Positions 3,855 through 24,664 of a DNA stretch of 36,579 nt are shown in pieces. Each line of letters starts with the position of its first letter. Positions within the stretch are counted from its first letter, which is position 1. Source of the DNA: Octopus bimaculoides (taxonomy: Eukaryota); the NCBI RefSeq assembly GCF_001194135.2, contig NC_068982.1, forward strand, positions 64,152,625 through 64,189,203, written 5' to 3'. The notes under the pieces are model-generated. The model did not search any database and was not told where the DNA came from. It saw only the letters and a program-made list of their open reading frames with translations. The position numbers were made by a program, and so were the translations under genes.

Positions 3855-3996
3855 CGGAGGTAAGGAATACGCACACCGCCCATTTTCGGCGTAACCCTAA
3901 CACTAACCCCTAAACCCTAACCCTAACCATAAACACCGGGTGTGCGTATTCGATCAAACTAAAGTATTTAGTTTGACCGCGTATTCTTTACCTTCG
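3855..3996. mobile_element. Small element with nested inverted repeats and telomere-like (CCCTAA) core (Helentron/HINE-like or MITE)
   Basis: Outer IR 3855-3872 / 3979-3996 (16/18 match); inner perfect 13-bp IR 3865-3877 / 3939-3951; 9-bp hairpin 3954-3976; degenerate TAACCC repeats 3892-3932. Confidence 0.55.
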
Positions 3997-5799: not shown

Positions 5800-6690
5800 A
5801 GATCGATTAGTCAGGAAGAAGTACAAAAAGGACATGAAGAAGAATTACACAAGAAAGGACTACGCAATCAATTCCATATAGGCACAATAGAAGTTGCTGG
5901 GGAAAAATAGGCAGGGTTAGCTGATGAAAGGAACGCAAAAAAAGAGACCGAGAGCACTATACCGGCAGCACAAGACCAAGCTCTGGCCACGAACTGGAGG
6001 GTCAACCTTAAGAATGAGCAAGTGTCCCCGCTGTGCCGCATCTGCAATAGCGTGGATAAAACCATTGCCCATATCACGAACGAATGCCCTAGACTTGCCC
6101 AAAACCACTACAAGTTGTGGCGACACGATCAGGTAGCGTAAGTGCTACATTGGAAACTGTAGGAAAAGTGGGACTAGAGAGAGGTAAGACGTGGTATGAG
6201 CACAAATCACAAAGAGTGGCGGAGTCGGAGACTAGCAAAATCCTCTGGGATTTCCCAATCCAAACAGATCATGTGGTAGAGCATAACAGACCGGACTTAA
6301 TGGTGGTGGACAAGGTGCACCACATATGCTATAGAGCCTCAAAGGTTGCATACCCCTTTGAGCCACGAATAGTCAAGAAGGAAGGCGAAGAGTGAGATAA
6401 GTACAACCCTCTTAAGTACCAAATAGACCGGCTATAGAACATGAAGAAGGTGAAAATAGTACCAATTGTTGGGTCCTTAAGAACAGTATCAGAAGGCATC
6501 AAAGGGGAATAGAGTGCCCAGTAGAACTGTTACAAAAGATTTGCCTCCTTAGCATGTCCAGAATAATCAGGAAAGTATTAGCTGAAAAGAACGGATAGCA
6601 TGGCACCGTTGGCTGCAGGTAGCAAGCCCGCTATGGATGCAAGACTCCAGGAGCTCCAACAAAACCGGTGATAAAAAGAAATAATAATGA
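5800..6690 (+). mobile_element. 5'-truncated R4/Dong-clade non-LTR retrotransposon (zinc knuckle + restriction-like endonuclease), pseudogenised
   Basis: From 5941: KETESTIPAAQDQALATNW...LCRICNSVDKTIAHITNECPRLAQNHYKLWRHDQVA*VLHWKL* (CCHC knuckle, RHD). After a frameshift: KTWYEHK...KILWDFPIQTDHVVEHNRPDLMVVDK (PD-D/ExK REL domain) ...KKVKIVPIV. Ends in an aataataat tail near 6680-6688. Confidence 0.88.
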
Positions 6691-7498: not shown

Positions 7499-7549
<51 letters not shown>

Positions 7550-7830
7550 ATATATACATATATATATATAAGTAAACATATATATATATATATATGAATA
7601 TATATATATATAAATATATATATATATAAATATATAAATATATATAAATATATATATATGTATATAAATAAATTTATACATAAATATATTAATAAATATA
7701 TATATATATATGTATATATATATAAATATATATATATATATGTATAAATATACATATATATATATAAATATAGATATATATATATATATAAAATATATAT
7801 ACATATAAATATATATATGTAAATATATAT
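7025..7830. repeat. (TA)n low-complexity tract with N gap (7045-7498)
   Basis: Direct reading of the sequence. Confidence 0.95.
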
Positions 7831-7836
7831 TTAAAT

Positions 7837-8443
7837 AATGTTAAATCTCTGAACGAGGTATTAACAGTAACTGCACGACAAGGTGAAGTATATTTGCCAC
7901 TTAAATGTGGCTGACCCCTAAGGGTGGATGTTACTGTTGCTTTTAGCCCCAGGAGAACATTTCCTCCAGCTGGCTATTGAAACACATCTGTGTCCTGTCT
8001 GTATTTGNNNNNNNNNNACATTTCCTCCAGCTGGCTATTGAAACACATCTGTGTCCTGTCTGTATTTGCAAAGGGAAGTCATCCTTCCCATCTTGATCTG
8101 TGATACGTACGGACTCGAGTTTCTGGGTATTTACCCGTCCTCAGCGTACGACAATCGCCGACCTTCGATGCGAAAAATGTCCCGATGCAAATGCATATAT
8201 CTTTTTCCAATGAAATTATTCACTGATCTCAAAAAAGTGAAAACAAGCAATGTTAAATCTCTGAACGAGGTATTAACAGTAACTGCACGACAAGGTGAAG
8301 TATATTTGCCACTTAAATACGGCTGACCCTTAAGGGTGGAGGTTACTGTTGCTTTTAGCCCCAGGAGAACATCGCCTCCAGCTGGCTATTGACACACATC
8401 TGTGTCCTGTCTGTATTTGCAAAGATGGCAAGGATGACTTTCC
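7837..8443 (-). mobile_element. Non-autonomous ~350-nt partially tandem unit carrying a hammerhead ribozyme (retrozyme / Penelope-like pseudo-LTR)
   Basis: Direct repeats start at 7837 and 8249 (aatgttaaatctctgaacgagg...gtatttg). The offset of 412 includes a 61-nt artefactual duplication across the 10-N gap, so the unit is about 351 nt. No ORF. Hammerhead motif at 8102-8156. Confidence 0.7.
8102..8156 (-). ncRNA. Minimal type I hammerhead ribozyme
   Basis: Minus strand reads CGUACG CUGAGGA C-GGGU-AAAU-ACCC-A GAAA CUCGAG UC^ CGUACG: 6-bp stem I, CUGANGA core, 4-bp stem II, GAAA, palindromic stem III segment and GUC triplet. Predicted cut between 8112 and 8111. Confidence 0.8.
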
Positions 8444-9306
8444 TCTCTCTGTCTCTCGGATTTTCTCTGTCAATCACTCACACATTCACTCACTACAAAA
8501 ACTAAATAAAAAATTTCAGTTATCTCTCTCTCTCTCTCTCATATACGCACACACCATCAACATTACTCTCTCTGTCTTGCACAGCCCATCAAACACACAT
8601 ACACACACACACAAACATACGCACGCACATCAATTCTTCCATCTCACGCCAACTTCCAAAGAAGTTCAGTCATAAAACTGTCCACGTCTCTTTTCATTTG
8701 ACGCCCACTTCAAAAGATCCCCTTTCCCCAAAACACATATTAAAAAAATATTTTCACTTGTCCGGCCATTGATCGAGAGATAAAACACAAACCATCTCCT
8801 AGTGACTGCAAAACTCCCGCCAAATTAGCCGCAGAAAATACATGCACACATGCACACACACACGTCCATTTCATATGTTTTTCACTTTCTCTATGATTAT
8901 ACACACGCCCAGTACAATAGCTCTCACATACATTTACGTCTTCAACAGGTATGTATCTATTCTATAATATAAATTGTTTTGCTATAAGCGTATAATAATT
9001 ACTTATTCCATATTCACTTAGCTTTTCTCTTCACTTTTCTTAAATTGGATACGTCTGCTATTAATTCTTACATACAATTTCCCCGTTAATTCTTACAACT
9101 TCATTGTTAAAGCAATTCTTAACGTCAACTTCTTAATGCCTCTTCTATTTTTCCTAGCCCCCATACTTACCGAGAACAGCAATTAAAACTTTTTCTAACG
9201 CAATTCTTCTTTCTTGCTCACACACCTTACAGTTTCTCATTCAAACTACATAATATGCAGAATTGTCGCATTAATAGAGTAGGGTGTTTTCAGGGAGATT
9301 TGGCTG

Positions 9307-9625
9307 CTATGGAAAGTTCCGAGGAGGGAGAGGAATTACTTCCTGGAAATTTNNNNNNNNNNNNNNNNNNNNNNNNNNNNNNNNNNNNNNNNNNNNNNNN
9401 NNNNNNNNNNNNNNNNNNNNNNNNNNNNNNNNNNNNNNNNNNNNNNNNNNNNNNNNNNNNNNNNNNNNNNNNNNNNNNNNNNNNNNNNNNNNNNNNNNNN
9501 NNNNNNNNNNNNNNNNNNNNNNNNNNNNNNNNNNNNNNNNNNNNNNNNNNNNNNNNNNNNNTGGGAATGGTAATTCCTGGAAAGTTCCAAGGATGATAGT
9601 TCCTGGAAAGTTCCCAGGATGAGCT
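9307..9625. repeat. 26-bp minisatellite spanning an N gap
   Basis: Unit ggatgatagttcctggaaagttccca; TTCCTGGAA at 9340, 9574 and 9600 (offsets 234 = 9x26, and 26). Confidence 0.7.
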
Positions 9626-10185
9626 ACTCCCATTGGTGAAGACGTTTTCATCTTGTTGCTTAAAAAAGTCAACAGCAGATACAACGTCATCATCACTGCA
9701 ATACTGATTTCCAGCCAAGTATTTTTTCATGTTGGGGAACAGATGATAGTCAGATGCGACCAAATCAAGAGAATAGGGACGGTGATCAACCAGTTCAAAG
9801 TCATAGTCACGCACAACTGTCATTCTTTTCTACTCTAGGCACAAGGCCCGAAATTTTGGGAGAGGGGGCCAGTCGATTAGATCGACCCCAATATGCAACT
9901 GATACGTAATTTATCGACCCCGAAAGGATGAAAGGCAAAGTCGACTTCGGCGGAATTTGAACTCAGAACGTAGACAGACGAAATAACGATAAGCATTTCA
10001 GCCGGCGTGCCAACGTTTCTGCCAGCATGAAGCACAGCAATCATTGAAATCATGGACAAGTATGCTGGAGCATTGTCCTGATGAAGCAAAACTTTTTTCA
10101 TCACTTTTCCTGGGCATTTGGTCTTGATAACCTTTCGTAACTGCCTTAGAAAATTGGTATACTACTCTCTATTGATGGTGTGAAG
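9625..10185 (-). mobile_element. Mariner transposase C-terminal fragment split by a SINE
   Basis: 10185-10027 reads TINRE*YTNFLRQLRKVIKTKCPGKVMKKVLLHQDNAPAY. 9823-9625 reads VRDYDFELVDHRPYSLDLVASDYHLFPNMKKYLAGNQYCSDDDVVSAVDFF. Both are mariner catalytic-domain motifs (DNAPAH, YSPDLAPSDY). Confidence 0.9.
9826..10026 (-). mobile_element. tRNA-derived SINE, family C
   Basis: Minus strand GCTGGCAGAAACGTTGGCACGCCGG...GAGTTCAAATTCCGCC (B box), central CCTTTCATCCTTTCGGGGTCGATAAATT, tail GGCCTTGTGCCTAGAGTAGAAAAG. Many homologues elsewhere in the window. Confidence 0.88.
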
Positions 10186-23424: not shown

Positions 23425-23948
23425 ACTAATAAGAGCCACGTTTCTACTCCATAGAGGAGAATGGAGAAAATCGATGCGTTGTAGATGCGGTGCAGAAGAG
23501 TAGTGACACCAAAGGGAATTCCATAGAAAGTTCTTGACCCGGCGTCCAGTCCACACTGCAGTTGTTGGTAACTGTGGAGCTCAGGTAGATGAAGGGAGCT
23601 GACAAACACCACAACATCGGAGCCAATATGTTGCGGGGAAACGTCCGAGTCATCGCCGACATGCATCAGCTTGCTCTTCCCCAACTTACCTGGAAGCCAA
23701 GCTTTGCTGATTCCTCTCAGCATATGGTCAGTGCGTTCCTGTGCTGGTCGATCGAGTTGCTGAAGCAGGTGTTATCGTCCGCATACACCAGGTCAGTAAA
23801 GAGGTAGTGCCCGAAGGTAATGTCAGAAACTCGCTCACAGACCTTGGTCATCAGATAATTGATGACACAGTTGAAGAGGTCGGGGGCAGCCACGCAGCCC
23901 TGTCTGACACCGCTGTTGATGTGGAACCAGTCAGAGTCCCTCCCTCTC
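23425..23948 (-). mobile_element. RTE-clade LINE reverse-transcriptase fragment
   Basis: SDWFHINSGVRQGCVAAPDLFNCVINYLM...FTDLVYADDNTCF (YADD at 23785-23774), then KLMHVGD...FIYLSSTVTNN and SILLYGVETW across frameshifts; typical RTE RT domains. Confidence 0.9.
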
Positions 23949-24664
23949 ATATATACATACTTTTTTTTTGTATACATCTTAACAAACACATGACCAGCTT
24001 CTCCTTCAACGCCAAAAGTATGCCTCTAAAAGTGAACTTGGAATCTCCTGTAATTTCCTGTAATCCTCAACGTCTTTAACCTCAAAATTATAGAAAGAGA
24101 GATCAATGACTACATATACATAAACAGACAGCATTCCTCTTATAGTTATCTTCAGTCCTATAATCTATTCTCTGATTTAGTACAAAAACAAAAATAGAGA
24201 ATAAAGAACGTTATCTTAACGCCTTTTGCAAAAGAAAGCGGTTCTATAATAACTTTGATATGTAATTTAATCTTGCACTAAATTTAGGCAAAAATAAAGA
24301 GCAAAAACCTGAGTCCGAATGGTGATTGTTTGTGTAAGTAAAAGTTATACAGTGAAGCTGGTCAAATTTGGATAAGTTCGTATTCCGTGAAGACAAAAAG
24401 AGTCTGAGGTTTCAAGGCTAATCTGTCTGAGAAAAAAAAATTATCGTGTCTTTCTCAGAGGAAGACCCCCTTCTCTTCTCACACTATAATAACTTATTCA
24501 AACGCTCAAGCTTCTGTACATTAGATATAATCTTTCTTTGGTTCTATCTTTTTAAACTTTTCTTCGTTTTTCTTCAGATGTTTTCTTTTTCTTTTTTACT
24601 GCTTCTAGTCTTTAAGGAACTTTATATAGCGAACTTACATGGTTAAGTTATGTCTATCATGAGT

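Follow-up and report, generated by a model that had tools for sequence, protein, structure and literature searches.

A 351-nt repeat unit and its hammerhead motif

We analysed a stretch of 36,579 nucleotides (nt) of the Octopus bimaculoides genome (assembly GCF_001194135.2, contig NC_068982.1, positions 64,152,625 to 64,189,203 of the forward strand; hereafter the window), which holds a short non-coding repeat with a candidate hammerhead ribozyme on its minus strand. The repeat was considered as a possible relic of a retrozyme, a small non-autonomous retroelement that bears a ribozyme. It consists of ~1.5 direct copies of a unit of about 351 nt, as a preliminary description of the locus had proposed; the period is exactly 351 nt once an assembly gap artefact is collapsed (Table 1), and the repeat is the only long-period repeat of the window. 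A repeat search of the window returned a 171-nt direct repeat (7837–8007 and 8249–8419, 96% identical, start-to-start spacing 412 nt) and a 56-mer present three times, starting at 7957, 8018, and 8369. The spacings of the 56-mer are 61 and 351 nt, the former being due to the gap artefact. The second copy differs from the first by seven mismatches (~4% divergence), and the first copy, when collapsed, is colinear with it. Tandem Repeats Finder (TRF) did not report the 351-nt repeat in the window, presumably because of the gap.

The gap, a run of 10 Ns, lies inside copy 1. The 51 nt on its 5′ side (7957–8007) are exactly the 51 nt on its 3′ side (8018–8068), and copy 2 crosses the matching place with this 51-mer present once (8369–8419). 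No comparable flank overlap in unique sequence was found at the other seven gaps of the window. Given the exact flank overlap and the single 51-mer in copy 2, we read the flanks as continuous. The simplest reading is that two overlapping contig ends were left unmerged, which makes the printed sequence 61 nt too long. Alternatively, the gap conceals 300 + k × 351 nt of additional units, and a hammerhead in each unit could then be present at this locus.

Read on the minus strand from 8150 to 8106, the motif is CGUACG-CUGAGGA-CGGGUAAAUACCCA-GAAA-CUCGAG-UC-CGUACG. In stem I, CGUACG (8150–8145) pairs with CGUACG (8111–8106) through six Watson–Crick pairs; in the fold of the whole unit, GAU/AUC pairs prolong the stem beyond a UGU/U internal loop and lead on to a long imperfect helix, which agrees with the earlier remark that the stem could be extended past a bulge. 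CUGAGGA at 8144–8138 and GAAA at 8123–8120 contribute to a complete invariant core (C3 U4 G5 A6 N7 G8 A9, G12 A13 A14, A15.1–U16.1, and H17), and three helices surround this core with helix I open, the type I arrangement. The complete type I hammerhead described earlier from this strand was thus recovered with its listed elements. Helix III is made of an A–U and a C–G pair around UCGA, its eight nucleotides (ACUCGAGU, 8120–8113) forming a perfect palindrome. With U16.1 at 8113 and C17 at 8112, the predicted cut falls after C17, between 8112 and 8111, at the position anticipated before. Copy 2 ends short of the motif, leaving a single hammerhead at the printed locus.

Helix II (8137–8124) opens with a C·A opposition, C10.1 at 8137 facing A11.1 at 8124, and continues with GGG/CCC and a UAAAUA loop (alternatively GGGU/ACCC with an AAAU loop). 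The mismatch noted previously at the base of this stem is therefore real, and it is fair to suppose that it attenuates this copy. It is possibly one CpG-to-CpA transition away from a C–G pair, although this is speculation. Treating the C after A9 as a bulge of the type found in Penelope-like elements (PLEs), with G10.1–C11.1 intact, was rejected, as an extra A then precedes G12. The helices measure 6 bp (I), 4 bp (II), and 1–2 bp plus a small palindromic loop (III), the sizes given for canonical metazoan type I hammerheads by Cervera and de la Pena (PMC4209133). They are not those of the minimal hammerhead ribozymes (min-HHR) of PLEs, and "minimal", as the motif had first been called, was a loose label.

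When 66 nt were searched alone, the Rfam model Hammerhead_1 (RF00163) aligned with the motif over its full length, with an E-value of 0.0051 and with helix II skipped as a local end. The Rfam consensus for helix II is GUCC-CAAAUA-GGAC against CGGG-UAAAUA-CCCA here, the loop agreeing at five of six positions. Scaled, the E-value corresponds, for this one family, to ~7e-4 per window and ~1e-5 inside the ~600-nt repeat. We also used a descriptor of our own, which demanded at least five pairs in stem I, at least four in helix II, where one mismatch was tolerated, and an additional pair in helix III. Its single match in the window was the present motif; 3000 first-order Markov windows gave nine matches (0.003 per window). 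Required by neither search were the consensus-like loop 2, the 8-nt palindrome, the location in the repeat, and the strand agreement described below.

A looser pattern (CTGANGA-N12-14-GAAACTCGAGTC) returned 35 loci from metagenomes. At 33 of them stem I had 0–4 pairs and helix II 0–2 pairs, and these were taken as chance matches. One metagenome contig with proper stems (L001) carries two copies of an Rfam-level hammerhead (34.9 bits) and served as a positive control. Unlike the chance loci, the present motif, with its 6-bp Watson–Crick stem I and 4-bp helix II, behaves as a true hammerhead.

The contig L001 (Ga0049110_10014201) has identical hammerheads at 267–310 and 929–972 on its minus strand, 662 nt apart, within a 100%-identical 662-nt direct repeat with a GC content of 52%; their helix III is ACUCGAGU, as here. 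It may represent a dimer that is retrozyme-like, or a small circular element whose assembly ran beyond its own end. L001 and the octopus unit have 13 nt of helix III in common and nothing else.

Table 1. Positions of the repeat, its hammerhead motif, and adjoining features in the window.
Feature	Position	Strand	Remarks
(TA)n microsatellite	7499..7830		TRF period 2, 166 copies; abuts the 3′ end of the insertion (ribozyme sense); probable target site
Complete 351-nt unit (copy 1)	7837..8248	-	Printed as 412 nt owing to the 10-N gap and the duplicated 51-mer
Assembly gap (8008-8017) and duplicated 51 nt (8018-8068)	8008..8068		Most likely an unmerged contig overlap
Type I hammerhead motif	8106..8150	-	Core and stems read; RF00163 model 1-45/45, 19.9 bits, gathering score 34
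Partial unit (copy 2), 176 nt	8249..8424	-	Upstream 5′-truncated copy in ribozyme sense; without hammerhead
Inverted 23-nt tail	8422..8444	+	Reverse complement of 8072-8094 (91%); AAG microhomology at the joint to copy 2

Insertion anatomy and a second copy

The left end of the repeat (7837) adjoins the long (TA)n tract. At the right end the truncation is not clean: the inverted tail corresponds to segment 8072–8094, which would have come next in direct orientation. The order in ribozyme sense is the inverted tail at the 5′ end, the 5′-truncated unit, the complete unit, and a 3′ end in the microsatellite; the strand implied by truncation and inversion is the strand bearing the hammerhead. Judged from sequence, retrotransposition in ribozyme sense is suggested by the contact with the (TA)n tract, by the truncation of the upstream copy, and by the inverted tail joined through AAG; we infer that such anatomy is what target-primed reverse transcription would leave behind if the template was switched at the 5′ end. 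The inverted 5′ tail is comparable to the products of twin priming in L1. In addition, the inverted segment (8072–8094 and 8422–8444) holds a perfect 6-bp hairpin in ribozyme sense, GGGAAG-GAUGA-CUUCCC. This hairpin seems to be where the template switch or snap-back took place, the joint showing the AAG microhomology. The cleavage site of the hammerhead lies intact in the interior, so that a circle or a multimer left uncleaved would have served as template, and not a linear monomer produced by cleavage.

PLEs are reported to insert preferentially into microsatellites, for some clades into (TA)n, and their insertions include partial tandems, short tails, and inverted 5′ pieces (PMC8557442). No PLE coding sequence (reverse transcriptase, RT, or GIY-YIG) was found among the open reading frames (ORFs) examined in the window, namely the longer ones, and none lies beside the repeat. 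The only RVT_1 match in the window (23717–23989, minus strand, Pfam E 1.6e-9) contains a YADD motif and lies 15 kb from the repeat; we take this fragment to be similar to long interspersed nuclear elements (LINE-like).

Relatives of the unit were sought at the protein level. The 91-amino-acid (aa) ORF spanning the ribozyme had no relatives in a set of 5.8 billion sequences or in a representative set of 1.84 billion, and no exact look-up match. When the unit was translated in all six frames and searched as a pseudo-protein, one protein matched, the UniRef entry A0A0L8H1Q7 of O. bimaculoides (A0A0L8H1Q7_OCTBM; P0001). In this protein, residues 62–112 represent the translation of a unit copy, antisense to the ribozyme and with one frame shift; residues ~61–113 correspond to 8113–8266 on the plus strand of the window. 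Over the hammerhead stretch, 13 of 15 residues are identical to the unit, and beyond it 25 of 33 are. The copy runs without interruption across the unit junction (KVKTS/NVKSLN, the slash marking the junction), and the head-to-tail arrangement is therefore present at a second locus. The window contains no other exon of the A0A0L8H1Q7 gene, for which reason we treated it as a different locus.

Accounted for most simply by single-base changes, the two residue changes in A0A0L8H1Q7 turn CUGAGGA into CUGAUGA and a stem I C into U. The first concerns N7, the only free core position, and the second keeps a G·U pair. Third-codon positions in this copy hide G5, G8, 11.1, and A14; the changes are compatible with a conserved hammerhead, not proof of one. 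The relative supports a family that would be multi-copy and cephalopod.

A0A0L8H1Q7 itself is a troponin-like gene model of 1005 aa (PF00992), in which the unit-derived apparent exon sits between Glu/Lys-rich troponin segments. This exon is either a real exonisation of the repeat or a gene-prediction artefact.

The unit as RNA and related systems

The GC content of the unit is 42.7%, compared with 36% for the window. The RNA that monomer cleavage would release has a predicted minimum free energy (MFE) of −107.5 kcal/mol, compared with −84.3 ± 5.3 kcal/mol for dinucleotide shuffles (z −4.35); as a circle it reaches z −4.26, with ~60% of its bases paired. The antisense strand is likewise stable (z −3.7 to −4.1). 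For the isolated motif, the catalytic fold was predicted at −7.9 kcal/mol, 6.4 kcal/mol above the MFE structure (−14.3 kcal/mol), where CUCG is paired to bases of the core. Helix III was predicted at +2.2 kcal/mol as a hairpin and at −10.7 kcal/mol as a self-duplex, which in these models is the signature of hammerheads needing a second copy. Such dimer dependence was shown for axolotl retrozymes (PMC7229834) and argued for most metazoan type I motifs (PMC4209133). The printed locus offers helix III no duplex partner in cis. No tRNA or other Rfam family was found in the unit; with no tRNA, an origin from a tRNA or a short interspersed nuclear element was rejected.

[quoted passage not shown] A type I hammerhead in every unit, which places a monomer between two cleavage sites, is lacking in the locus as printed. 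Metazoan non-LTR retrozymes (Cervera and de la Pena 2020, PMC7229834; corals, mussels, axolotl, and others) are similarly built from non-coding tandem units of ~170–400 nt, with GC below 45–50%, a self-paired RNA, and no LTR, PBS, or PPT. The likeness extends to the retrozymes of axolotl and newt, in which helix III is a short palindrome and the ribozyme works best as a dimer. Whereas these elements have one type I hammerhead per unit, ~1.5 units share one hammerhead here, and C·A replaces G10.1–C11.1. With the type I hammerheads of RF00163, the motif has core bases, topology, and helix lengths in common, and its helix III is identical to that of L001; the differences are the low score and a helix II that the model leaves unscored owing to its C·A closing pair.

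The min-HHR of PLEs (Cervera and de la Pena 2014, PMC4209133) resemble the motif in being of type I, in the palindrome formed by 15.2–16.2 and loop 3, and in dimer dependence. The hammerheads in PLE pseudo-LTRs (pLTRs) further resemble it in their partial tandems, tails, and microsatellite targets (PMC8557442). However, PLE min-HHR have a helix II of 6–8 bp, a helix I of 4–5 bp, and one unpaired base after A9 with G10.1–C11.1 kept, whereas here helix I has 6 bp, helix II has 4 bp, and the extra C is opposed by an extra A, which sets the motif apart from min-HHR. Nor is the repeat adjoined by an ORF for RT or GIY-YIG among the longer ORFs, as a PLE pLTR would be. Satellite 2 of newts and salamanders and Sm-alpha of Schistosoma share with the octopus repeat tandem units of ~330 nt, a type I hammerhead, and a weak helix III favouring double-hammerhead cleavage (PMC7229834, PMC4209133). 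They form large arrays with demonstrated transcripts and cleavage, in contrast to the short, decayed, and isolated copy found here.

The described hosts of such retrozymes range from cnidarians to amphibians and include the mussel, a mollusc (PMC7229834), and a count of Rfam Hammerhead_1 matches gave 235 for a cephalopod, the giant squid (PMC6962438). The searchable literature yielded no description of cephalopod retrozymes.

Origin and status of the octopus copy

In our view, the locus is probably what remains of an inserted small retroelement, non-autonomous and equipped with a ribozyme, that belonged to the metazoan non-LTR retrozyme type. The preliminary description had proposed such an element for cephalopods, mobilised by a Penelope-type RT. 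The unit anatomy, the palindromic helix III, and the O. bimaculoides relative agree with the retrozyme assignment; the sub-threshold motif and the single hammerhead leave it incomplete. Taking the mechanism from the class (PMC7229834), for which it is established, and not from the present locus, tandem units of the octopus family would be transcribed on what is here the minus strand. The palindromic helix III of one unit would pair with that of its neighbour, followed by a cut after GUC, and a host RNA ligase would close the 351-nt monomer into a circle. Target-primed synthesis by a borrowed RT would then place a copy of the circle, or of a multimer left uncleaved, at a new site, yielding tandem copies longer than one unit. 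At the present locus, priming may have taken place in the (TA)n microsatellite and synthesis may have proceeded ~1.5 times round the unit, the 5′ end being resolved by a template switch at the hairpin that would have left the 23-nt inverted tail. The retrozyme class is currently hypothesised to be mobilised by a Penelope-type RT (PMC7229834; bioRxiv 10.64898/2026.07.22.740005), which would fit the insertion anatomy.

As to its present state, the copy is most likely a fossil and not a source element, unable to self-process or to make a circle, because it has a single hammerhead, no partner in cis, a broken 10.1–11.1 pair, and 4% divergence between its copies. The ~350-nt circle previously expected from the unit would thus not come from the printed locus by itself, which has only one hammerhead. 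We regard it as improbable, although worth stating, that the octopus family is a live retrozyme lineage with a closing pair at 10.1–11.1 other than G–C (C·A or C–G) that still cleaves as a dimer, with abundant ~351-nt circular RNAs in cephalopod tissues and antisense exonisation into host genes such as A0A0L8H1Q7.

A number of results weigh against the relic retrozyme. The scan of the whole window at the Rfam gathering threshold listed nothing, the hammerhead included, and a 700-nt scan (7800–8500) at E ≤ 10 listed only a spurious small nucleolar RNA. The check with Rfam hammerhead models that had been recommended for this locus gave an end-to-end alignment at 19.9 bits, short of the gathering score of 34, a deficit that we attribute to the usually conserved G10.1–C11.1 pair being C·A. 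This pair is highly conserved in hammerheads (PMC4209133). In a genome of a few gigabases, tens of chance matches of 19.9 bits are expected by scaling, and the motif alone is therefore unconvincing at genome scale. A family-specific hammerhead pattern had no matches in metagenome, viral, and prokaryote collections, and blastn (word size 7) found no further copy of the unit within the window. Only one further copy was found anywhere, as a protein, and no true covariation was shown. Finally, no target-site duplication was recognised by eye in the flanking sequence.

The hammerhead might instead be a chance look-alike in an ordinary local tandem duplication, with neither ribozyme nor retroelement behind it. 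Beyond the sub-threshold score and the broken 10.1–11.1 pair, such a reading can draw on the catalytic fold being 6.4 kcal/mol less stable than the isolated motif's MFE structure, and on the relaxed descriptor, which matches random sequence (nine times in 3000 windows) in a setting where many windows were screened at the first stage. Against this stands a joint probability of ~1e-5 that such a motif would lie in the one long-period repeat of the window. Also against it are matches to the family that were not required (the 6-bp Watson–Crick stem I, the 8-nt palindromic helix III as in L001, and the agreement of loop 2 at five of six positions), changes in the second copy that are compatible with the core, and a motif strand that agrees with the one implied by truncation and inversion. 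We therefore judge a chance origin to be quite unlikely. It is very improbable that the 1.5 copies are themselves an assembly artefact, with allelic or collapsed-repeat contigs placed in tandem around the gap. The assembler did have trouble here, as the gap with its 51-nt exact flank overlap inside copy 1 indicates, but copy 2 and the 3′ two-thirds of copy 1 lie on one uninterrupted contig (8018–8444), and the copies differ at 7 of 176 positions. Moreover, copy 2 has its own right-hand junction with the inverted tail, both ends of the repeat lie in different unique contexts, and the tandem junction recurs in the O. bimaculoides relative. On contig continuity, the 7/176 differences, and the distinct junctions, a haplotig or assembly duplication was rejected as the source of the repeat.

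A different kind of element is invoked if the 351-nt piece is a heavily 5′-truncated partial tandem, that is, the pLTR region, of an autonomous PLE. PLEs carry type I hammerheads in their pLTRs (PMC4209133); their insertions take the form of partial tandems, have short tails and inverted copies truncated at the 5′ end, and favour microsatellites (PMC4209133; PMC8557442). At the locus, a partial tandem meets (TA)n on one side and an inverted tail on the other. Retrozymes and pLTRs have also been reported to be phylogenetically intermingled (bioRxiv 10.64898/2026.07.22.740005). However, the 8248/8249 junction recurs in the O. bimaculoides copy, as a fixed 351-nt unit would have it and random truncation would not, the helix sizes (I 6 bp, II 4 bp, III 2 bp plus a palindromic loop) are canonical for retrozymes and not for PLE min-HHR, and no ORF for a PLE RT or GIY-YIG was among those examined in the window. 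This origin seems to us unlikely.

Taken as a relic retrozyme, the locus is a decayed copy of an already known class of element, real but fairly ordinary, and leaves knowledge of that class unchanged. Its value is as a seed sequence for a family search and as a small case study of an insertion that targeted a microsatellite, exceeds one unit in length, and bears an inverted 5′ tail. If the family were confirmed genome-wide, hammerhead-bearing retrozymes would be extended to cephalopods, whose genomes are unusually rich in repeats and RNA-level regulation, and the 351-nt unit would become a defined candidate for a ribozyme-made circular RNA in octopus tissues.

Elsewhere in the window, a second CUGAGGA-N14-GAAA string occurs at 21394–21418 on the plus strand, with a 3-bp helix II and A·C at its base. 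Being without stems I and III, it was rejected as a hammerhead and put down to chance; ~2 patterns of this type are expected per window, and four were seen. Transposon debris surrounds the element at 9562–9823 (−), 15077–15628 (+), 23328–23989 (−), 6117–6395 (+), and ~31.6–32.3 kb. It includes a mariner-like transposase C-terminus (by eye, with no Pfam hit), a zinc-knuckle (gag-like) ORF, the RVT_1 fragment, and apparent LINE C-terminal fragments (by eye), none of which looks Penelope-like. Our descriptor gave no hammerhead near an interstitial telomere-like repeat at 3892–3932, which consists of ~6.5 copies of TAACCC flanked by a short inverted repeat (gaatacgcacac / gtgtgcgtattc).

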